Shown here: positions 5,954 to 52,038 of the stretch, in pieces
Layout of the letters: each line of letters begins with the position of its first letter
Numbering within the stretch: position 1 is the first letter of the stretch
Position numbers and translations under genes: made by a program
Notes under the pieces: model-generated
What the model saw: only the letters and a program-made list of their open reading frames with translations
What the model was told of the DNA's origin: nothing
Databases searched by the model: none
Virus record (IMG/VR): IMGVR_UViG_3300049048_000052
Location: 124,001-188,000 of that record
Strand: one strand, 5' to 3'
Length of the DNA: 64,000 nucleotides

Positions 5954-6499
5954 TTAACTCATTGGAGTTAGTTGGTGTATTAGTTTATAAGCGTTCTTAA
6001 CTAGATCTCTAGAGAGCATCTTACCACCAGATATCAATTTTATAATTGGGTTCTTGCGTGAGTGGTCTAACTGAAATCTAGCTTGAGGATATAAGTCCAG
6101 GAAGGATGTGGCAGTATCTTTATTAGAGGCAGCTATTTCTATCCTATAAGTCTTAACTTTATAGACTTGTACTAAAAGTTGCTTTATCAGATCTATTAAA
6201 GTAGGATCCTGGTTGCAGAAGTAAACATGATTTGTTTTATCTGTATGCCAGCCCTCACATAAATAGGCCGTATGGGCAGCAATGGAAAGAGGTGTTAGGA
6301 GTAAATCATCTGTAGGGGAGATATAGTTCTTCCTAGCTAGAAAGTTATACTCTGAGGCAGATCTCATTGGTATATGGTACTTCCTTAAGTAAGACCTAAT
6401 AGTCTTATGGTTACAGGCTAGTAACTGACCTATCTGATAGGGATTAAGTTCCTGAGTCAGGTATAGATCCTCAAGTACCTCTTTATTAATTAACTTCAT
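5954..6499 (-). CDS. intron-encoded HTH + LAGLIDADG-like endonuclease, antisense to the intron
   Basis: N-terminal HTH (LEDLYL...QIGQLLACNHKTIRSYLRKYHI); AYLCEGW...VYFCNQDPTLI LAGLIDADG-like block. Confidence 0.7.
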   Translation of the reverse strand: MKLINKEVLEDLYLTQELNPYQIGQLLACNHKTIRSYLRKYHIPMRSASEYNFLARKNYISPTDDLLLTPLSIAAHTAYLCEGWHTDKTNHVYFCNQDPTLIDLIKQLLVQVYKVKTYRIEIAASNKDTATSFLDLYPQARFQLDHSRKNPIIKLISGGKMLSRDLVKNAYKLIHQLTPMS

Positions 6500-6753
6500 A
6501 ATCCTGAGCCTTCATGTAGAAATACATGTTGTGAACGAAGCTATATGCGGGAAACGCTTAAAGCCTACAACACTATATGTCTACCAAGATATAAGTAACA
6601 GTTTGTAGGATGTAACAATAGCCAATCCGCAGGGAAGATACCTAGGTATCCCCTCAGAGACTAAACGCTTTGCACCTTAACGTAGAGACGAAGGTGATGA
6701 TATAGTCCAGACTACAACAGCTTACGCTGGCCTATGAAAGTAGGAGTAGTAAG
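5956..6753 (+). mobile_element. group I intron in tRNA-Leu anticodon (after U34)
   Basis: Exon ends in U, intron ends in G; core elements ATATGCGGGAAA (P), AATCCGCAGG (Q), TCAGAGACTAAA (R), GATGATATAGTCC (S); IGS-like GAGCCT at 6506-6511. Confidence 0.9.
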
Positions 6754-6908
6754 AGGAACCTGTGCCGCAAGGCGTGAGAGTTCGAATCTCTCCTCCCCCA
6801 TTTACAGTAGTGAGCACACGGTATGATGTAGGGTTCCCCCTACTTGTACTAAGGCTAATACCTTTGCTATATTCACTACTGTAAACATATTGATTGTTTC
6901 TAATAATT

Positions 6909-7924: not shown

Positions 7925-8272
7925 ATGGAAATGGATATATTTAGCCCCTCAAGACTCGTCTGTATTCACTATGGAAATAATGCTATAGATGAGATAATGG
8001 ATGGTAGAGCTGAGGAAGCCCTAGATAAACTAGAGAAGGCTCGTGAGGATGATATGTTCGATATGGAGCATTATCAATCTATACTGCTCTATGTGGGTGC
8101 ATGCCTTAAACAAGAGAGCATGGGCCATTATATACAATTCCTATTGACTATCTTTGATGAAGATGATATTACTAGTATTAACACCGCAGATTCTAAGGTC
8201 AATGGTGTCCTAGCGGAAGCGGCAGCAATCCATAGCGGGGATGGAGCAACGGGAGGCTCGATGGTCTCATAA
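7925..8272 (+). CDS. hypothetical protein (3' end overlaps tRNA)
   Basis: ORF with AAGGAAGG SD; stop codon falls in the anticodon loop of the tRNA at 8234. Confidence 0.55.
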   Translation: MEMDIFSPSRLVCIHYGNNAIDEIMDGRAEEALDKLEKAREDDMFDMEHYQSILLYVGACLKQESMGHYIQFLLTIFDEDDITSINTADSKVNGVLAEAAAIHSGDGATGGSMVS

Positions 8273-8308
8273 GCCATACATCGCTGAGTTCAATTCTCAG
8301 CCCCGACA
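8234..8308 (+). tRNA. tRNA-Met(CAU), initiator-like body, irregular acceptor stem
   Basis: D stem GAGC/GCTC; anticodon arm ATGGT-CTCATAA-GCCAT; T arm CTGAG-TTCAATT-CTCAG; only CGGGG/CCCCG of the acceptor pairs. Confidence 0.7.
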
Positions 8309-8310
8309 TT

Positions 8311-8535
8311 GTCAGTTTACCTGTCCTGACGTTGTGAAAAGATAGGTGTAGGTCATAGGCCTAACTAGCAAGAATTGAGTTCGAATCTCAACAGGTCCAT
8401 TTCGAGGGCCTGACTTGGTAATCGATTGTTAGCATGAGGAACTATGACTGAAGGTGTGTACAACCAAAGTACAGAACAACAAGTGCAACCAATAACATTG
8501 TACCCTTCTCAAGGGTAAGTTCTATAGTAGTGTAA
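8311..8535 (+). ncRNA. ssrA: tmRNA, circularly permuted (two-piece): acceptor piece about 8311-8399, coding piece from 8406; tag ORF 8485-8535 ATNNIVPFSRVSSIVV*
   Basis: T arm TTGAG-TTCGAAT-CTCAA and CAGGTCC-A lie upstream of the 5' strand GGGCCTG (G3:U70); P2 helices GTCATAG/CTATGAC and CTAGCAA/TTGTTAG; pseudoknots at 8311-8347 and about 8453-8473; cyanobacterial-type NNIVPF tag. Confidence 0.9.
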
Positions 8536-8540
8536 TCTAC

Positions 8541-9305
8541 TCAGGCGTTTAGTATACTAAACGCCTGCTCTTTTTTACGCATACAGTAGGGACCACCTAA
8601 GTTATATAACCTAAATATAAAAGTCTTAAGGATTTTACCTTGAAAGGAGAAACCGTACTGATTATTCCAGTTGGGATTCTTACTTTGCAAGTCCCTCATA
8701 TGTACATTAAGGGATATATCTAGTAGTTTGTTGAGCCTAGAGGCTAGAGTATACATAAAAGACTTTGAGCATCCATAGGCTGTAAGTCTACGGGAGGACC
8801 AACACCCGTCAGAGTCTAGATATCCTCTAATGAAATCTAACTCGTAGACGCTGTCTATAAGAGGCTCAGGGTAAATCATAGTCTTGGACTTATTACTTTC
8901 TAACTTTAGGATAGTAGTTAGATCTCTATGTAGACTAGTGGAACATATAGCGAGCTGAAGACAGTTAGAAGCTATATTCCTTATTTTATAATCGGTATTG
9001 AGGTTAGATTGTATCTGTTCTAGAATATCCCTGTCCGAGGTAGTAAATACTATCTGACATCCATTTCTATGTAAGTGACCATCCCCATACAATACACCTA
9101 ACATCCAAGCTTTAAAGGTGTCCATAGGGAACAATTTATAGTTCTTAAGCTTAGATAATGGCTTATAGGACATTGCCCCGGAGCTCTGCAGGACTTTGTA
9201 TATACAATAAGAGGATAGCCCTAATTTAGAACTAATATTTGTAACAGACTGACCCTCCTTATACATAGTTATAATAGGCGTTGGGTTAATATGAGTAGAT
9301 TTCAT
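8541..9305 (-). CDS. double-motif LAGLIDADG homing endonuclease with N-terminal HTH
   Basis: AWMLGVLYGDGHL and DFIRGYLDSDGCW motifs. Confidence 0.9.
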   Translation of the reverse strand: MKSTHINPTPIITMYKEGQSVTNISSKLGLSSYCIYKVLQSSGAMSYKPLSKLKNYKLFPMDTFKAWMLGVLYGDGHLHRNGCQIVFTTSDRDILEQIQSNLNTDYKIRNIASNCLQLAICSTSLHRDLTTILKLESNKSKTMIYPEPLIDSVYELDFIRGYLDSDGCWSSRRLTAYGCSKSFMYTLASRLNKLLDISLNVHMRDLQSKNPNWNNQYGFSFQGKILKTFIFRLYNLGGPYCMRKKEQAFSILNA

Positions 9306-9911: not shown

Positions 9912-10122
9912 TCTAGATGAGATCGAGCAGGTGTTGGCTTACTTTGGGTTCGTAGAGAAGCTATTCGTAGGAGTACTACTCTCCTTGTTAGCTGTTATCT
10001 TAATTAGATCCTGTACTATACCGTGGTTAGATGTAACCATAGCTATATTAGGAGGGCTGGTTATACCAGTTGCTACCTTATGGTATATAGACAGTTGTAG
10101 TAGTAAATGGAGAGACTGGTAA
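9904..10122 (+). CDS. small membrane protein
   Basis: two hydrophobic segments. Confidence 0.5.
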   Translation: MNNLDEIEQVLAYFGFVEKLFVGVLLSLLAVILIRSCTIPWLDVTIAILGGLVIPVATLWYIDSCSSKWRDW

Positions 10123-10128
10123 ATACCT

Positions 10129-10200
10129 GCCACCTAGGCCAAATGGTGCGGCGGTGAGTTCATACCTCACTTATAGTAAGTTCGATTCTTACAGGTGGTA
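10129..10200 (+). tRNA. tRNA with CAU anticodon (Met or Ile2)
   Basis: Acceptor GCCACCT/AGGTGGT+A; anticodon arm GTGAG-TTCATAC-CTCAC; T arm GTAAG-TTCGATT-CTTAC. Confidence 0.85.
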
Positions 10201-10220
10201 TTGTCGAGTTAAAGGAATAT

Positions 10221-10640
10221 ATGAGTCTTAGTCAGCAAGTAAAAGATTTCTTAAGTGTGGCCCCAGCTAGCTGGATTCCTCCAAGGAAACTTATCACTAC
10301 TAAGTTGAGAGAGCCTATCAAGGGATGTCCTCAACTGAATGTTTACCCCCTGAACCAAGTACTAGAAATTAGCATGGATGGGGCACCCTTCTATCAACCC
10401 AATACTATATGTAGACTAACGGATTCAGATTTCCAGTTCACTATGGTCTACGTTCCAGGAAGGGGTCCCATAGAAGTCTATGTGATTAAAGATCAGAGTA
10501 CTGCCTATGTGTTTGAGGATCAGGTAGAGGCCTTTGCATTCCTCTACACTATTAAGCCCTACGAGCTAACTCAACTGGACGGAGATCCAACCTATGAGTG
10601 GGCACAGTTCAGATCTCACCTAGCCCCAGTACCCGCTTGA
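10221..10640 (+). CDS. hypothetical protein
   Basis: 139-aa ORF with AAGGA SD. Confidence 0.65.
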   Translation: MSLSQQVKDFLSVAPASWIPPRKLITTKLREPIKGCPQLNVYPLNQVLEISMDGAPFYQPNTICRLTDSDFQFTMVYVPGRGPIEVYVIKDQSTAYVFEDQVEAFAFLYTIKPYELTQLDGDPTYEWAQFRSHLAPVPA

Positions 10641-10648
10641 TATAATTA

Positions 10649-10672
10649 TGACTACAGTATATACTGTAGTCA
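10649..10672. repeat. perfect 24-bp palindrome
   Basis: TGACTACAGTAT-ATACTGTAGTCA immediately 5' of tRNA-Thr. Confidence 0.8.
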
Positions 10673-10675
10673 CTG

Positions 10676-10747
10676 GCACCCTACCCCTATATGGTGAGGG
10701 ACCTGCCTTGTAAGCAGGACAACACAGTTCGAGTCTGTGAGGGTGCT
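10676..10747 (+). tRNA. tRNA-Thr(UGU)
   Basis: Acceptor GCACCCT/AGGGTGC+T; anticodon arm CCTGC-CTTGTAA-GCAGG; T arm CACAG-TTCGAGT-CTGTG. Confidence 0.9.
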
Positions 10748-10750
10748 TTT

Positions 10751-10919
10751 ATATGTGCCTATCTTATTCAGTCGGCATATGTAACTATATAAATATCTCC
10801 ATCAAACTGATAGAGTCATAGAGCCTATATGGTCTCTGACTAAGAGCTGATACGGATGGAATATTGGGGGATAGGTACTCCCGATGAGGGCCCCAGCTCT
10901 CAACACAAATATCAGCTCT
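10751..10919 (+). ncRNA. unassigned structured RNA candidate
   Basis: ORF-free; several complementary segments (ATATGTGCC/GGCATATGT, TCCATC/GATGGA, AGTCA/TGACT, AGAGCTGATA/TATCAGCTCT, TGGGG/CCCCA). Confidence 0.45.
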
Positions 10920-10922
10920 CCT

Positions 10923-10991
10923 AGCAACTAACTGGCTTATGCTAACCCTTAATCAGGTAATCATATATTGGTTCAACTCCAATAGTTGCTT
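10923..10991 (+). ncRNA. tRNA-like RNA / pseudo-tRNA
   Basis: Acceptor AGCAACT/AGTTGCT and T arm ATTGG-TTCAACT-CCAAT intact; D and anticodon arms degenerate. Confidence 0.55.
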
Positions 10992-11061
10992 TTCCCAGTC
11001 GCATAACTTGCGTTCCCAACTGGGATTCTTAGCAATGGTTGGCTTAGTCCAATCATTTCTT

Positions 11062-11134
11062 GAGGCTGTCGTCTAAAATGGTAGGACTCCCCAAGTTAGT
11101 GGGGCAGATGTAGGTTCAAATCCTACCGGCTTCA
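11062..11134 (+). tRNA. tRNA-like RNA with 6-nt anticodon loop (undetermined isotype)
   Basis: Acceptor GAGGCTG/CGGCTTC+A (G3:U70); D stem GTCT/GGAC; CCCCA-AGTTAG-TGGGG; T arm GTAGG-TTCAAAT-CCTAC. Confidence 0.7.
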
Positions 11135-11139
11135 TTTAT

Positions 11140-11211
11140 GCAGTGTTGGTCTAATGGATAAGACGTCTCCAAACTAAGGAGTTAATGTAGGTTCGATTCC
11201 TGCTAACTGCG
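11140..11211 (+). tRNA. tRNA-like RNA, loop AAACTAA (nominal ACT, no U33)
   Basis: D stem GTCT/AGAC; CTCC-AAACTAA-GGAG; T arm GTAGG-TTCGATT-CCTGC; 5-bp acceptor GCAGT/ACTGC. Confidence 0.6.
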
Positions 11212-11316
11212 TTTGTGATTTATACAACTTAATATAGTGACCATAATCACCCCACATTACACAAAGCATATCCTCTTAATATTCAGTATTAACTACTGTA
11301 GGTATTAGAGGATATT

Positions 11317-11598
11317 ATGAGTAAGTGGGAATGTCCCCAACAATGCCCCTATCAGGCAGATGATTCTAAGTGGCCCCATATCCGACTCTTCCTCTTAACT
11401 GTGGTTGCGGTCGGCATCCTCTGGGGAACAAAGATATATAAGCAGCAGGACATAGAACCAGCTGATTGGGGTATAGGCTTAACGGCCCTAGTCCTAGCAT
11501 CTAATCACCCTGAGACCCTACACAAGATAACTACTAAGGCAGCTAATAAGTTATTGGACTTAAACCCTGCGGAGGAAGATGAAAGTGAGGGAAGATAA
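11317..11598 (+). CDS. small membrane protein
   Basis: two hydrophobic segments, acidic tail, AGAGG SD. Confidence 0.6.
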   Translation: MSKWECPQQCPYQADDSKWPHIRLFLLTVVAVGILWGTKIYKQQDIEPADWGIGLTALVLASNHPETLHKITTKAANKLLDLNPAEEDESEGR

Positions 11599-12155
11599 TG
11601 ACAAGTACAACGTCCTTAAGCCGCTTCCTAGAGTGGCTTAAGAGTCTGTTCTATAAGAAATCTAAGGGTGAAAAGAGCCATGTCAGGATTATTGAAGAAA
11701 TTAAGAGTCCTATATCCAGGACTATTCGGATTAACAGGGATTACCCAGGGGCAGTTGATACCTGGAAGTCCATACCAATGTATGAGTCAGCCTATGACTT
11801 TTATTGCCTCGTTGATAGAACGAAGCGGGAGGAAATGGGCCGAGATAACCTGTTCTTGCGAGCAGGCAATACCACTATACGAGTTAGAGCTGATCCAAGG
11901 AGTGGACTGGGAGGGGATATTAACTCTTCACATAGAATCACAATCGTTGGAGTCTCAAGACTACCAATAGGTAAAGGTCAGTATCAAACTGAGGTCCTAT
12001 ATGTAGGCCTATTTAATCTAGTTAAGTCCTTCAATTCATATGATAGTGTAGCTAAGGTCTTAGCTCATCGTATAGCTAAAAAGATGAGTGTTGTTATAGT
12101 TGATAATATGGATTGGTGTACATTTATAAATGATGAGAAGAATAGGTTGATATAA
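11598..12155 (+). CDS. hypothetical protein
   Basis: 185 aa, coupled to the previous stop (TAATG). Confidence 0.6.
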   Translation: MTSTTSLSRFLEWLKSLFYKKSKGEKSHVRIIEEIKSPISRTIRINRDYPGAVDTWKSIPMYESAYDFYCLVDRTKREEMGRDNLFLRAGNTTIRVRADPRSGLGGDINSSHRITIVGVSRLPIGKGQYQTEVLYVGLFNLVKSFNSYDSVAKVLAHRIAKKMSVVIVDNMDWCTFINDEKNRLI

Positions 12156-12221
12156 TGATTCTCTATTAGTTACTTTAGGACCTCAGGGTGATTACCTTGG
12201 GGTCTTATCTTTAGGAGGGAT

Positions 12222-12365
12222 ATGTCTAGGAGTGATCCTTTACCTGTTACTTGTCAGACCTGTAAGGGCCATGGTAAGTTGTTTGATAGGAGACCAGGTC
12301 GTGGGGATGGCAAGAAGTGCTATGAGTGTGATGGCAGTGGTTTCTCAGTGCAGTCTAATGATTAA
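12222..12365 (+). CDS. 47-aa DnaJ-type zinc-finger miniprotein (not in ORF track)
   Basis: AGGAGG SD; CQTCKGHG...CYECDGSG. Confidence 0.65.
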   Translation: MSRSDPLPVTCQTCKGHGKLFDRRPGRGDGKKCYECDGSGFSVQSND

Positions 12366-12382
12366 AGGGTGTGATGTAAGTT

Positions 12383-12592
12383 ATGTCTAGAGGTGGTGGT
12401 TGGGCAGTCTGTCATGTATGTAATGGTACTGGCGTATTGCTAGATAGAGAGGACGAGGTCATCGACTGTAAGACCTGTAACAATAGCGGTTTAGAAGAAG
12501 TAGATAATGACTTTACTAAGGTTAAAGACCTATGGAAGTTATTAGTAGGTCAAACACTAGTAGAGAGGATGAGTGCTAATGTCGGGGCCTAA
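12383..12592 (+). CDS. DnaJ-type zinc-finger miniprotein
   Basis: CHVCNGTG...CKTCNNSG. Confidence 0.65.
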   Translation: MSRGGGWAVCHVCNGTGVLLDREDEVIDCKTCNNSGLEEVDNDFTKVKDLWKLLVGQTLVERMSANVGA

Positions 12593-12838
12593 GGAGGAAA
12601 AGGATGATGCGGTTGTGTTGAGTATGGGGGATGTCACCTTTGTTCTCTTTAAGAATGCTAATGGAGAGGTAGTTGCCCTTCCAGTAGATGAGGATGATGA
12701 AGATGACATGCCCTTTGGGATTCAGATGCCCCAATGAACCTTGTAACGAATGGACCGACTGTGACTATAAGGATAGATTAATATATCTACCTGAGAAGCA
12801 TGAGGACCCTAATGATTGGCAGGATGCCAGTTAAGCCT

Positions 12839-12918
12839 CCCCGCTACGTCCTAAGGTAGGACACCTGCCTTCTAAGCAGGCGCCTTGAGCATAACAGGTT
12901 CGATTCCTGTAGCGGGGG
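12839..12918 (+). tRNA. tRNA with UCU (Arg) anticodon and 13-nt variable arm
   Basis: Acceptor CCCCGCT/AGCGGGG+G; D stem GTCC/GGAC; CCTGC-CTTCTAA-GCAGG; variable CGCCTTGAGCATA; T arm ACAGG-TTCGATT-CCTGT. Confidence 0.85.
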
Positions 12919-13943
12919 TTAATACATTTGGAGAAGAGTATGTCGGAAGTCTGGTTGGCTATAGGTATTACTATGTGGTTATGTGTAGGTATAGGAGCTA
13001 TGTTCCTTAACCTCTTTAAGATTAGTATAAAAGAGTTTATGGGAGTGAAGACTGATGCGGTCCATCTTACGTTAATGTCTTTATCTATCATTGCTCTGGG
13101 CCCAATAGGTCTAGCCATTGTTATTTGGGGGTAATATGAAGGATCCAAAACAGAATCCTGGTCAGGCCGCTGCTGCGGTCGCTATTGTTGTAGGCTTGAT
13201 TGCAGGGGGCGCAGTTATAAGGGACGAGATCGTTAGGAACGTCAATACTCAGGAGCAAAAGCATGACCGATAAGAAAGAAGAGAAGGATACTGGTAAAGG
13301 TTCAAGTAATAAACCGATAACTAAGGAAAGCGATAAACCAAACGGCGGATCACAATATATCGGCGGTATACCTGGCCTGGGGGATAAATGAAGTTAGTGT
13401 CTATTTGTCTAGGGTTCCTAGCAGTAGTTACGGGACTGTGTTTTATATCTATTCAATCCAACCTACCCTGCGATTCGTGGGTGATGGGGATGGCTATGAC
13501 TTACCTATTATCATTGGGAGGTATATCCTTCCTCTTATACACTGTTTGATTAATGAAGGGGCCTCAATTAAGGGGCCCATAAAAGGAGAAAGATGATTGG
13601 AACAATGTGGAGAAATAGAGTCAGTGGTATACCCCATTGGGTGGTAGGTCATATGATTATAAATCCTATAAGATTAGATACCCACACTAATACTCACGGT
13701 ACGTGGATCATATTAGAACATAGGGCAAGTGGACCTAAGGAACTATATGTTTCTGAGCATGAGCTATCTGAGCTCTATAATATGGAAGGCAATATATGAT
13801 AATGGAATTCTGGATGCAGCCTGTTATACAGGAGTTTGCTACTGTAATATTGCTTTCTATCGTGGCCCCTATATTGATATCATTGCTATTCTATTGGTTG
13901 TATAAGGATTAATTGATTGGTTACTTAGTAAGGAATCAATATA

Positions 13944-39716: not shown

Positions 39717-41257
39717 ATGAAATTAGAAGTACTAGATAAAGGTTTTATAGAGGTGGTCGATACCTTAGGTAGCGATCTAACCGTTGTTAATAGCGCTAGG
39801 GTATCCTTTGGACATCGTAAGGAGTCCCTTGATAAATCAGATATTAAGTTAATTGGATATTTAAAGAAGCACAAGCACTATTCTCCATTTCGCCATATGA
39901 TGGTGCAGCTGCATATCAAGATGCCTGAGGTGGTGGCAAGACAACTGTTAACAGAAATGGTGACCAGTAAATACAACTCCCTTGTATTAATCTAGTAATA
40001 GATTATGCAAAGGATAAATCAATGATTCTAGAGACTAAGGGCGATAAGGTACTACGTAGATGCGATACCTGTGGTAATGAGAAGTGGGTTGAGAAATGGA
40101 AGTACTATAAACTAGAGGAGCACACCTGTAGAGATTGTTACTGCCGATTAAAAGCAGCAGCACGTAAAGGTAAACCTTCTAGATACAAAGGTATTATTAG
40201 GCAACCCAATCCTAAGAGAGGGAGTACTTATATTAATTCCTCAGGTTACGTCGAGGAGTATATAGGTGCTGTAGATAATAATAGGAAAGGCAAGTATTAT
40301 CTCCAACACAGATTAATAGTTGAGAAGTACCTAGGTAGAGTCCTTGATAAATCAGAACTAGTTCACCATATTAATGGTGACAAAACTGATAATCGACTTG
40401 AGAACCTATACCTATGTCAATCTATGTCTCACCACAAGACTCTACACCAACAATTAGAGCAAGTATCTATGCAATTGGTTAAACTAAATCTTATAGAATT
40501 TGATAATGAAGCTGGTAGCTATAGAATAGCAGCCCATATCAGTAATGATATGGTGAATAATCCTGTGAATTCAGGGGAACCCCTAACGTATAATGACGAG
40601 GGCAATCCTGATCCAAGCTTTGAAGAGTAGTCTTCATTGAAGGAGCAACGACTATCCGTAAGGAGTAGGGCTCAAGGGAGCTCGAAGCGCAGGACATCCT
40701 AATAGGATGATGATATAGTCTGAGCTTTAGGGAGACCTAAAGAGAGTGTATGGAGCCGATATACTCGTAACATAACTGATAAACATGTCGTAGGTATTGA
40801 GACCTCCTCTTCCTCTGTATGTAAGGATCATGCATGGAATGAGATTAGTAGACGTTATGTAGAGATAGATGATTACTATGTGCCAGACATCTGGCGCCTG
40901 CAGTCTCCTTCTAATAAGCAAGCATCTCAGTTAGATGAACACGGTAATCCTATAGTTAACGAGGCTATACAAGAGTGGGCCTGTAAGGAATACGCAGACT
41001 TTATAGCTTCCCTAGATCTTAAGGTTAAAGCATTTATAGCTAAGGGTATTGCTAAAGAGCAGGCACAGATCATGCTGCCTATCTCTTTCTATACTGAGAT
41101 CTATTGGACCGCATCATTCCAGGCCATCATGAACTTCATTGAGCTTAGGAATGACAACCATGCCCAATGGGAGATTAGGCAGTATGCCCTTGCACTCCTC
41201 CGAATAATGGAGCAATTATTCCCAGTCTGCACTAATGCATGGTTAGAGAATAGCTGA
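39717..41257 (+). CDS. thyX: flavin-dependent thymidylate synthase, split by group I intron (exons 39717-39948, 40779-41257)
   Basis: NSARVS, HYSPF; spliced junction restores VARQLYKHVVG...WNEISRRY; HAQWEIR. Confidence 0.95.
39949..40778 (+). mobile_element. group I intron in thyX
   Basis: U|...G| boundaries; AATTCAGGGGAA (P), AATCCTGATCCAAG (Q), GCAACGACTA (R), GATGATATAGTCT (S); IGS GCAG at 40529-40532. Confidence 0.9.
40022..40630 (+). CDS. intron-encoded HNH homing endonuclease
   Basis: CxxC pairs; QHRLIVEKYLGR.L...E.VHHINGDKTDNRLENL. Confidence 0.9.
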   Translation: MILETKGDKVLRRCDTCGNEKWVEKWKYYKLEEHTCRDCYCRLKAAARKGKPSRYKGIIRQPNPKRGSTYINSSGYVEEYIGAVDNNRKGKYYLQHRLIVEKYLGRVLDKSELVHHINGDKTDNRLENLYLCQSMSHHKTLHQQLEQVSMQLVKLNLIEFDNEAGSYRIAAHISNDMVNNPVNSGEPLTYNDEGNPDPSFEE

Positions 41258-50378: not shown

Positions 50379-51542
50379 ATGTTATTAGTACAAGAGTATC
50401 TGTCTTCTGGCAAGTCACTAGAAGACTTATCAAATGAGTTAGGATTAAATATTAAGCATCATCCTGTCGATCCTCTAGTCATCATTGACTATGATCAGAT
50501 CAGGAGTCCTAGAAAGGATCCTATTGTGCGTGAGTGCAGAGGTCTTGTCCTAGAGAAGGATACGTGGAAGGTAGTAGCCAGATCATTCAATCGCTTCTAT
50601 AATTGGGGAGAGTTCCCTGAGGAGGAGCACCTATTTGATTGGAAGAATGCTACCTGTGATGAGAAGATAGATGGATCTATGATCATCCTCTACCATTACA
50701 ATGGAACCTGGAGAGTTAACACTAGATTCAGTTGGGCTGATAGTATAGTGGGCGATGGTCCCTATACCTGGACCCAATTGTTTGAGATAGCTATGGGTAA
50801 AACACTACAAGAAGTTGGGGATATCCTAATAGCTGAGAATAATAGGTCCTATGTATTCGAATTGGTATCTCCGTATAACAAGGTAGTCCGCTGGTACCCT
50901 AAACCTAAACTTTACCTATTAGGGGAGTTTAGGTTGGATGTGGATCACGATGAGTACCATGATGCGGGTTTAGCTTTGCATGCGGCCTTCCTTGATGTAG
51001 ATAGGCCTAATCGCTATATCCTCAATAATATAAGGGCTATCAAGAAGTACCTAAGGGAACTAGAGGCTAATGACCCAACTAATGAGGGTGTAGTCATCAA
51101 TGATGGTATTCACTATTGGAAGTTAAAGAATGAGAAGTACTTGGTCCTCCATAAGATGAGGGGCGACTCAGGTAACTTATATCATCCTAAATACTTAGTA
51201 CCCTTTATTCTTACTGGTGAGACCTATGAGCTACTCACTTACTTCCCAGAGGTAGAGGATAAGTTACTAGAGTATAAGGCTCGTATAGATAAAGAGTATG
51301 ACCTATTACAAAAGGTATGGGCTGATGCTTGTGGCATACGCTCTAGGAAAGACTTTGCTCTTGCTATCAAGGATGCTACTAGATTCAATAGTCTACTCTT
51401 TAGTCTTCGTAATGAGACCGATGTAATCCTATTCCCAGAGGAGGAACTAGGAGATAGTATGGACCGCCTAGATGAGATGTGGCGTAACTCTTTAGACTTA
51501 ATACTAAAAGTATTATTTGCTAAGGAGGTTGTTCATGTCTAA
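50379..51542 (+). CDS. RNA ligase, T4 Rnl1 family
   Basis: ECRGLVL, FNRFYN, EKIDGS, FELVSP, EGVV, KLKN. Confidence 0.9.
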   Translation: MLLVQEYLSSGKSLEDLSNELGLNIKHHPVDPLVIIDYDQIRSPRKDPIVRECRGLVLEKDTWKVVARSFNRFYNWGEFPEEEHLFDWKNATCDEKIDGSMIILYHYNGTWRVNTRFSWADSIVGDGPYTWTQLFEIAMGKTLQEVGDILIAENNRSYVFELVSPYNKVVRWYPKPKLYLLGEFRLDVDHDEYHDAGLALHAAFLDVDRPNRYILNNIRAIKKYLRELEANDPTNEGVVINDGIHYWKLKNEKYLVLHKMRGDSGNLYHPKYLVPFILTGETYELLTYFPEVEDKLLEYKARIDKEYDLLQKVWADACGIRSRKDFALAIKDATRFNSLLFSLRNETDVILFPEEELGDSMDRLDEMWRNSLDLILKVLFAKEVVHV

Positions 51543-52038
51543 GGCAGGTATAGTATTGATAACCATTGGTATACCTGGATCCGGTAAGTCTACATTCATA
51601 AAGGAAAAGATAAAGGCGTTTCCTGATGCGGTCTATATAAATGCTGACAGTATTAGAGAGGAGCTAACAGGTGATGCTGGTAATGGTACTAGGGACCGTC
51701 AGGTTTGGAATCTATTAGATGAGAGATACCTAGAGGCCCTAAGAAGTGAGAAAGAAGTTATAGCATTAGACTGTACCTTTACTCGACCCAAGAGAAGGAA
51801 GCCCTATATACAACGGGCTAAGAGCTTTGGTTATATAGTACATTTATTGTTTATGGATTGTCCTCTCGAATTAGCAATAAAGAGGCAGGACTATAGAGAT
51901 AGGAAGGTGCCAATAGATGTCATCAAGACCATGTATGATAAGCTAACAGGTGCCACAGAATACGAGGAGATAAACTGTCGTGTACATAGAATTACTCAGA
52001 AGGATAGTGGACCTAATGGGGGACTGCGATTACCGTAA
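51535..52038 (+). CDS. polynucleotide kinase (AAA_33) domain protein
   Basis: GIPGSGKST, NADSIR, D.T....RR, R...R.RKVP.DVI. Confidence 0.85.
   Translation: MSKAGIVLITIGIPGSGKSTFIKEKIKAFPDAVYINADSIREELTGDAGNGTRDRQVWNLLDERYLEALRSEKEVIALDCTFTRPKRRKPYIQRAKSFGYIVHLLFMDCPLELAIKRQDYRDRKVPIDVIKTMYDKLTGATEYEEINCRVHRITQKDSGPNGGLRLP

Follow-up and report, generated by a model that had tools for sequence, protein, structure and literature searches.

The DNA considered here, called the window throughout, is a stretch of 64,000 nucleotides (nt) corresponding to bases 124001-188000 of the 251,780-bp IMG/VR virus record IMGVR_UViG_3300049048_000052, the genome of a jumbo phage (called G000). Positions 10641-11316 of the window form a 676-nt block without a credible open reading frame (ORF), and three transfer RNA (tRNA)-like elements, designated E1, E2, and E3, lie entirely within this block on the + strand (Table 1). 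They had been described in an initial annotation as tRNA mimics with non-decoding loops, and this turned out to be a fair description, with all three lying on the + strand at the positions first given. By sequence, E2 and E3 are members of the tRNA family, yet they lack what defines a decoder, and E1 is tRNA-like in its top half only.

Anatomy of the three elements

E2 and E3 exceed the curated threshold of the tRNA family in Rfam (RF00005, 29 bits), whereas E1 does not: this model gives no match to E1 even at E ≤ 10, and ARAGORN calls the element only at 60% stringency. In E2, standard pairs are formed at all 21 of the stem positions, and the tertiary residues U8, A14, G18G19, the T54-C56 motif, and A58 are all present—that is, the elbow is intact. 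The anticodon loop of E2 is, by contrast, only 6 nt long (AGTTAG), and ARAGORN accordingly reports a tRNA with a 2-nt "anticodon." E2 is also the only one of the 25 tRNA and tRNA-like genes of this genome with a G3:U70 pair, and it has A73 in addition. E3 has a 7-nt loop (AAACTAA), the residue at position 33 being A; its elbow residues are kept, and its acceptor stem retains five of seven pairs, with Infernal showing non-pairs at 6:67 (G.A), 7:66 (U.U), and, in the anticodon stem, 27:43 (U.U). The label "Ser(ACT)" given to E3 by ARAGORN is not credible and was rejected because the long variable arm is missing. E1 combines complete acceptor (7/7) and T (5/5) stems and a TTCAACT T loop with a D arm reduced to a hairpin of 4 bp and 4 nt lacking GG, an A at position 8, and an anticodon arm consisting of a 3-bp stem and an 8-nt loop.

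In a conventional decoder, the loop is 7 nt long and contains U33, a purine at position 37, and the anticodon at positions 34-36; none of the three elements has this arrangement, with E2 deviating in loop length, E3 in residue 33, and E1 in both its loop and its shortened stem. Intact acceptor and T arms together with the elbow (G18G19, T54-C56, and A58) are found in full in E2, and E3 keeps the elbow. The initial annotation had already recognized these features, including the perfect acceptor and T arms and shrunken D and anticodon arms of E1, the G3:U70 pair, A73, and 6-nt loop of the E2 cloverleaf, and the missing U33 of E3. Its more general statement that the stems are preserved holds for E2 and for the acceptor and T stems of E1, and holds only in part for E3 with its three non-pairs.

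A genome-wide family of odd tRNA-like genes

A scan of both strands of the 252-kb genome looked for perfect T stems that carry a TTCRANN loop and adjoin a 7-bp acceptor stem without a gap. It returned 21 distinct matches on the + strand, E1 among them, and no match on the - strand or in any of 20 shuffles; E1 is therefore real and more than a chance match. Together, ARAGORN, Rfam, and the scan gave about 16 ordinary tRNAs and at least nine elements unable to decode normally, making 25 tRNA and tRNA-like genes in total. The altered part is the anticodon arm in all nine of the odd elements, and the alterations are varied: one 5-nt loop, four 6-nt loops, one 8-nt loop, A33, and arms extended or interrupted by other structures (Table 1). 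Several changes in the anticodon arm or variable region are constructive rather than signs of decay, namely the 16-bp stem built around a complete tRNA-Arg and the hairpin of about 100 nt. In the former case, the acceptor stem of the outer element is perfect and is accompanied by a D-like hairpin and a T arm; removal of the inner tRNA-Arg would cut this outer element in two. Acceptor stems of the odd set contain three non-pairs in 63 positions, compared with four in 112 for the normal set. Most of the 25 genes stand singly between ORFs of the same strand, often with gaps of 6-40 nt, so that their excision necessarily cuts mRNAs.

At the tip of the extended arm of the element at genome positions 50463-50548, GGAGG is followed by a spacer and then by ATG TAC TGA. 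This element and the two that follow it, up to position 51591, form a second cluster of odd genes, next to a canonical tRNA with a CUA anticodon (genome 50858-50929; L007:1859-1930).

A dinucleotide TT directly 3′ of the discriminator was found in 18 of the 25 genes, comprising eight of the nine odd elements and 10 of the 16 normal tRNAs; given a background frequency of 0.061, these counts correspond to P = 1.6e-9 and P = 3.9e-9, respectively. The trailer lies outside the structure used in finding the elements and is thus independent of their detection. A gene-encoded CCA is present in none of the 25 genes. In Bacillus, uridines right after the discriminator promote RNase Z cleavage of CCA-less precursors. 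The TT trailer is probably a 3′-processing signal, and its presence in both sets points to a common route of maturation for odd and normal genes.

Table 1. Positions of the tRNA-like elements and associated features; positions refer to the window unless marked as genome positions.
Feature	Position	Strand	Evidence and details
Permuted (two-piece) tmRNA, cyanobacterial type	8326-8562	+	RF04321, RF01851, ARAGORN; directly after tRNA-Met
Sigma-70-like promoter candidate	10637-10665	+	TTGATA, 17-nt spacer, TATACT; 10/12 consensus matches
Perfect 24-bp palindrome	10649-10672		Overlaps -10 box of promoter candidate; single copy in genome
Canonical tRNA-Thr(UGU)	10675-10748	+	ARAGORN; RF00005 46.5 bits; 7-nt loop CTTGTAA; TT trailer 10749-10750
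77-nt three-way structure	10843-10919	+	Inverted repeat and folding
E1, tRNA "top half" mimic	10923-10991	+	Folding, genome scan; discriminator U; TT trailer 10992-10993
Spacer hairpins (two)	10993-11025 and 11031-11060	+	Folding
E2, full cloverleaf	11062-11134	+	RF00005 42.6 bits, ARAGORN; TT trailer 11135-11136
E3, cloverleaf	11140-11211	+	RF00005 37.1 bits, ARAGORN; discriminator G73; TT trailer 11212-11213
Odd tRNA-like, anticodon arm extended to ~12 bp	genome 50463-50548 (L007:1464-1549)
Odd tRNA-like, 6-nt loop CATTGT	genome 50941-51009 (L007:1942-2010)
Odd tRNA-like, 6-nt loop CGTTTG	genome 51520-51591 (L007:2521-2592)		Otherwise strong (56.8 bits)
Odd tRNA-like, 5-nt loop GATAA	genome 101265-101337		Overlooked by ARAGORN and Rfam
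Outer tRNA-like of nested case	genome 103982-104146		16-bp "anticodon" stem around complete tRNA-Arg(CCU) at 104025-104096
Odd tRNA-like, 6-nt loop CTCTCA	genome 112396-112567 (L008:897-1068)		Near-perfect ~100-nt variable-region hairpin

Comparison with other phages

Four distant, tRNA-rich phages sharing a DUF8224 protein served for comparison, three of them as complete genomes and the fourth in part. In the present phage this 674-aa protein is encoded 8 kb upstream; it has more than 1000 homologues, none of them above 46% identity. Among 148 tRNAs called by ARAGORN in the comparison phages, a single one has a 6-nt loop, and there are about six non-canonical elements in all. The non-canonical share is thus nine of 25 here versus about six of 154 in the four relatives, making such elements roughly ten times commoner in this phage (Fisher P = 1.4e-5). 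With loop size as reported by ARAGORN taken alone, three of 20 are odd here versus one of 148 in the relatives (P = 0.005).

For neither E1-E3 nor the other odd elements was a sequence relative detected in the comparison phages, whose contigs show no synteny to the region, and same-anticodon partners were found there neither for the odd elements nor for the normal tRNAs of this genome. Searches of GenBank phages with the locus by megablast and blastn gave no match, nor did DNA patterns made from E1 and E2 (none was run for E3) in IMG/VR or in 185,579 prokaryote genomes. The downstream 185-aa ORF found no homologue except itself, and the 495-aa ORF and the helicase gave no scored match.

Elsewhere in the broad phage group, however, one tRNA-like gene is orthologous between the distant jumbo phages G024 (L102:5578-5660) and G008 (L127:4646-4729). 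Its "anticodon" loop of 17-18 nt (AAUUUUAGUAUGC.CACA) hardly varies, and five compensatory pair changes are seen in the acceptor and T stems. This orthologue provides a proof of principle that conserved non-decoding tRNA-like genes exist in this group. As additional observations on these phages, amber-reading tRNAs with a CUA anticodon recur in G000 (the gene at 50858-50929), G024 (three copies), G008, and G005, and the distant relative G001 contains a tRNA whose anticodon loop has 8 nt, CTTTCAAT, at L003:2187-2260 (-), as well as a transfer-messenger RNA (tmRNA) at L004:3410-3671 (-) with the tag AKTFAQAA.

Other features of the block

The first gene of the non-coding block is the canonical tRNA-Thr(UGU), which is followed by a hairpin and then by the three-way structure. 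Just upstream of tRNA-Thr sits the promoter candidate; it is a consensus match only, and such sites are no commoner in the region than in shuffles. The palindrome that overlaps it may be an operator or a 5′ hairpin of the transcript; a repeated phage promoter motif was ruled out for it by its single occurrence in the genome. The three-way structure has a perfect 10-bp closing stem around an 8-bp and a 6-bp hairpin, stops 3 nt before E1, and matches no Rfam family at E ≤ 10. The two hairpins between E1 and E2, which the initial annotation had placed at about 10993-11056, were found again; the stretch as a whole folds with -23.5 kcal/mol (z = -4.19), and none of 200 shuffles was equally stable. 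Beyond E3, the next ORF starts at 11317, about 105 nt downstream. A further + strand hairpin at 11268-11315 pairs an upstream TCCTCT with the Shine-Dalgarno-like AGAGGA of this ORF, and the predicted fold suggests translational control of ORF 11317, the first gene beyond the tRNA-like block. The ORFs neighboring the block gave no useful family, feature, or fold match.

Source genome and host

The genome is estimated by CheckV to be 100% complete and has a G+C content of 42.5%. Among its genes are those for an intein-bearing family-A DNA polymerase, a class II ribonucleotide reductase, helicases, and LAGLIDADG endonucleases, and it contains three group I introns (window 6487-6728, window 40510-40742, and L009:1-656). 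Directly 3′ of the first of these introns lies a 58-nt element (window 6743-6800) whose T arm is perfect and whose 3′ end is C-rich; it scores 18 bits with RF00005, and a matching 5′ exon that would make it part of a split tRNA was searched for and not found.

By ribonucleotide reductase, the nearest named phages are Nodularia cyanophages, at 47% amino-acid identity. The window also contains a permuted tmRNA of the cyanobacterial type, with the tag ATNNIVPFSRVSSIVV according to ARAGORN, which labels it "permuted." It scores 45.0 bits with RF04321 (cut-off 47, E = 1e-7) and 43.1 bits with RF01851 (E = 1.8e-10), thus falling below the Rfam gathering thresholds and being missed at those settings. 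On the basis of this tmRNA, the host is probably a cyanobacterium. The tRNA-like domain of the tmRNA has G3:U70 and A73; a tmRNA identity of E2, which shares these residues, was rejected, E2 being a 73-nt cloverleaf without a coding part and the tmRNA a separate gene.

Family searches of the genome detected neither a CCA-adding enzyme (PF01743) nor RtcB (PF01139). RNA-repair genes are present, namely a Thg1-like enzyme (genome 98714-99133), two PF09414 RNA ligases, and an AAA_33 kinase. In the tRNA-Met(CAU) at window 8233-8309 (+), the acceptor stem contains two non-pairs at its 5′ end, and the Thg1-like 3′-5′ polymerase might conceivably carry out 5′ editing or repair of phage tRNAs such as this one. 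Reassignment of a stop codon was considered and rejected, as standard-code ORFs tile the genome and long ORFs end in TAA (98), TAG (67), and TGA (32); stop recoding was likewise rejected, same-frame ORF pairs not being enriched for any stop and the lone nearby same-frame triple consisting of three genes with ATGs of their own.

Only one public run contains this DNA, a soil-metagenome DNA run that is probably the source sample. In an independent Logan assembly of that run, window positions 10000-13000 are identical, without indels, at about 50x word depth (Logan's figure), indicating that the short loop of E2 is no assembler slip.

Proposed processing without decoding

As judged from the sequences, the odd elements retain the acceptor stem and T arm, the trailer, and for the most part the elbow, which are the parts read by tRNA-processing enzymes; the variable part is the one read by the ribosome. 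It is likely that E1-E3 are processed like tRNAs and do not decode. With a confidence that falls short of even, we favor a fuller statement, namely that they are non-decoding, tRNA-derived genes retained because the tRNA machinery handles them, and that they form a processing or stability module comparable to the t-elements of plant mitochondria. Such a module is the simplest function that calls for no more than the features observed.

According to this proposal, E1-E3 would be co-transcribed with tRNA-Thr on the + strand, and the promoter-like site at 10637 would probably drive this transcription. Host RNase P would make their 5′ ends, and an RNase Z-type endonuclease would cleave just after the discriminator, ahead of the conserved UU. 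The CCA tail would be put on by a host enzyme, because the genes lack CCA and the phage lacks a CCA-adding enzyme. Stable tRNA-shaped RNAs would thereby be set free, and the same cuts would split the long same-strand transcript, the mRNA of ORF 11317 gaining a defined 5′ end near 11212. Selection would act on the acceptor stem, T arm, elbow, and trailer, leaving the anticodon arm free to shrink, to stretch, or to take insertions. The anatomy, the genome-wide family, the common trailer, and the excess over relatives are direct observations; from them we infer the transcription and the cleavages of E1-E3, and likewise that punctuation or stability is what is selected for, and not some action of the freed RNA in trans. 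Among the roles put forward in the initial annotation, that of processing signals fits best, since conservation is found precisely in the acceptor stem, T arm, and trailer. Its suggestion of selection for shape draws support from the number of elements (at least nine), the TT trailer in eight of the nine, the built-up features, and the excess over the four relatives, and is weakened by the broken pairs of E3.

Several observations weigh against this proposal. Three tandem elements beside a real tRNA-Thr exceed what punctuation needs, and the distance from E3 to the next ORF is 105 nt, with E1 and E2 farther away still. E3, with its three non-pairs, and E1, lacking the elbow, might be taken for ageing pseudogenes, and the TT trailer would likewise survive in a young pseudogene. 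Both the scan and the covariance model detect elements with intact stems only, which amounts to an ascertainment bias. The comparison phages are very distant, being only 40-44% identical on one protein; orthologues of E1-E3 were not found in the searches described above, and hence there is no covariation or conservation support for these three. Finally, no RNA-seq run with the E1-E3 locus was found among public runs.

Comparison with known systems

In the tRNA cluster of phage T4, species 1 and 2 are non-decoding stable RNAs matured by the tRNA-processing machinery; their likeness to E1-E3, drawn from this general description, is taken as a lead only. In plant mitochondria, mimics of the acceptor and T arms, termed t-elements, define mRNA ends (Forner et al., 2007; PMC1920247). 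E1-E3 are similar to these in that a mimic of the acceptor stem and T arm is kept, without decoding, between same-strand genes of what in mitochondria are polycistronic transcripts, and they share the TT trailer with the normal tRNA genes of the phage. Cleavage of t-elements by RNase P and RNase Z creates the mRNA ends there, at sites mapped experimentally, whereas those of E1-E3 are predicted. Moreover, t-elements belong to an organelle, not a phage, and E2 and E3 are far more complete tRNAs, so the resemblance is functional only.

Canonical and nuclease-resistant phage tRNAs resemble the present elements in gene type, genomic setting, and, for the latter, an altered anticodon loop (PMC10264068; PMC11464382; PMC11555353). 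The resistant tRNAs, however, keep the 7-nt loop and U33 and still decode, whereas the loop length is lost in E2, U33 in E3, and the arm in E1. Pseudogenes, "undetermined" tRNAs, and tRNA gene fragments (e.g., PMC9897764) are similar in being aberrant matches of tRNA finders, but the elements described here are full-length, have clean acceptor and T stems and a common trailer, and occur about ten times as often as in the comparison phages. YrlA and other bacterial Y RNAs are non-coding mimics of the tRNA elbow and acceptor (PMC4201824), and the Ro/TROVE partner protein is encoded by some jumbo phages (PMC7824862). Y RNAs differ in being closed by a long Ro-binding stem, and a Y RNA or YrlA identity was rejected, TROVE (PF05731) being absent from the genome and no Rfam Y-RNA match being found.

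Alternative explanations

The most serious alternative, although we consider it rather unlikely, is that E1-E3 are plain tRNA pseudogenes—functionless leftovers of the fast gain and loss of tRNAs in phages that have not yet been deleted or become unrecognizable. E2 is perhaps a single 1-nt deletion away from a working tRNA and, with T arm and trailer 73% alike, resembles together with E3 an old tandem duplicate; E3 has A33 and three broken pairs, and E1 has lost its D and anticodon arms. Detection favors intact stems, the neighboring ORFs are orphans in a poorly sampled lineage in which orthologues were not found, and an occasional aberrant tRNA is present in other jumbo phages too. Nine "fresh" pseudogenes beside 16 working genes would, however, amount to about ten times the rate seen in the four comparison phages, and useless DNA is usually lost fast from phage genomes. 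The lesions also cluster in the anticodon arm and leave acceptor stems as clean as those of working tRNAs, although E3 has its three non-pairs in stems. E1 in particular should be old, with two arms remodeled, yet it still has its T loop, its TT trailer, and all 12 pairs of the top half. Elsewhere in the family, structure has been built up, as in the 16-bp stem around a nested tRNA and the 100-nt hairpin.

E1-E3 could be trans-acting decoys or sponges for host factors that read tRNA shape (acceptor stem, T arm, and CCA tail), for example defense nucleases cleaving the tail or acceptor, and would be harmless as decoys since they are barred from translation; we regard this as improbable. Such a role would suit the retention of shape with loss of decoding and the many copies with differing acceptor sequences, and the RNA-repair kit of the phage (Thg1-like enzyme, two PF09414 ligases, and AAA_33 kinase) points to tRNA-directed attack (for context, PMC7824862). 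Furthermore, the defense nuclease Cas12a3 reads the acceptor stem, T arm, and CCA tail instead of the anticodon (PMC12851939), and phage tRNAs are known counter-defenses (PMC10264068; PMC11464382; PMC11555353). Against this, no such decoy has been described, a literature search on 6-nt anticodon loops or tRNA decoys in phages having found nothing specific, and the elbow is missing in E1. The narrower proposal of the initial annotation, decoys aimed at anticodon nucleases, is a poor fit: the anticodon loop is the very part not retained, and it is there that nucleases specific for the anticodon would need the mimicry. The strongest form of a decoy for shape-reading nucleases, in which the nine or more CCA-tailed "top-half" mimics constitute a dedicated counter-defense titrating shape-reading nucleases or toxins, with E2 alanylated as well, is slightly less probable again. 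It is very unlikely that E1-E3 are unconventional decoders, whether suppressors of stop codons or doublet or quadruplet readers acting in frameshifting. All three loops do contain a stop-complementary triplet (UUA in E1 and E2, CUA in E3), a canonical CUA-anticodon tRNA is encoded at genome positions 50858-50929, and distant relatives have CUA tRNAs and, in the 8-nt loop of G001, UCA. The triplets are nevertheless off-register, not at positions 34-36 behind U33; they are not rare in A/U-rich loops (an estimated 0.2-0.3 per loop, roughly), and one occurs in one of the four other odd loops readable as short loops. Least probable of all is that E2 alone is an alanine-accepting RNA, charged by alanyl-tRNA synthetase via G3:U70 and A73 for a non-decoding purpose, be it as an aminoacyl donor, as a sink for the synthetase, or as a partner of the phage tmRNA system. 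This synthetase is established to ignore the anticodon (PMC9976931), and besides E2, sole bearer of G3:U70 among the 25 genes, the only other acceptor stem found with G3:U70 and A73 is that of the permuted tmRNA 2.5 kb upstream. A single G:U pair in one of 25 stems could, however, be chance, a connection between E2 and the tmRNA is without any support, and no alanine-using transferase turned up, although no search was aimed at one. The role of aminoacyl donor proposed in the initial annotation has the G3:U70 pair and A73 of E2 as its sole basis.

Biological implications

Both aberrant phage tRNA-like genes and tRNA-like processing signals were already known; the novelty lies in how dense and varied they are in a single phage, with evidence that the processing determinants are kept. 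The long-standing question of why phages carry tRNAs has been raised anew by the discovery of many tRNA-directed defense systems. If the odd elements were pseudogenes after all, the genome would document an unusually fast turnover of tRNA genes and would serve as a warning against counting the matches of tRNA finders as decoders. If, on the other hand, they were a counter-defense repertoire, they would represent a new class of RNA anti-defense factor, and the degenerating anticodon arm would be explained. As it stands, more than one-third of the tRNA-shaped genes of this genome are non-decoding and retain features of tRNA-type maturation, a pattern which suggests that phage "tRNA genes" can be kept for purposes beyond translation, such as transcript processing or the titration of tRNA-binding factors.

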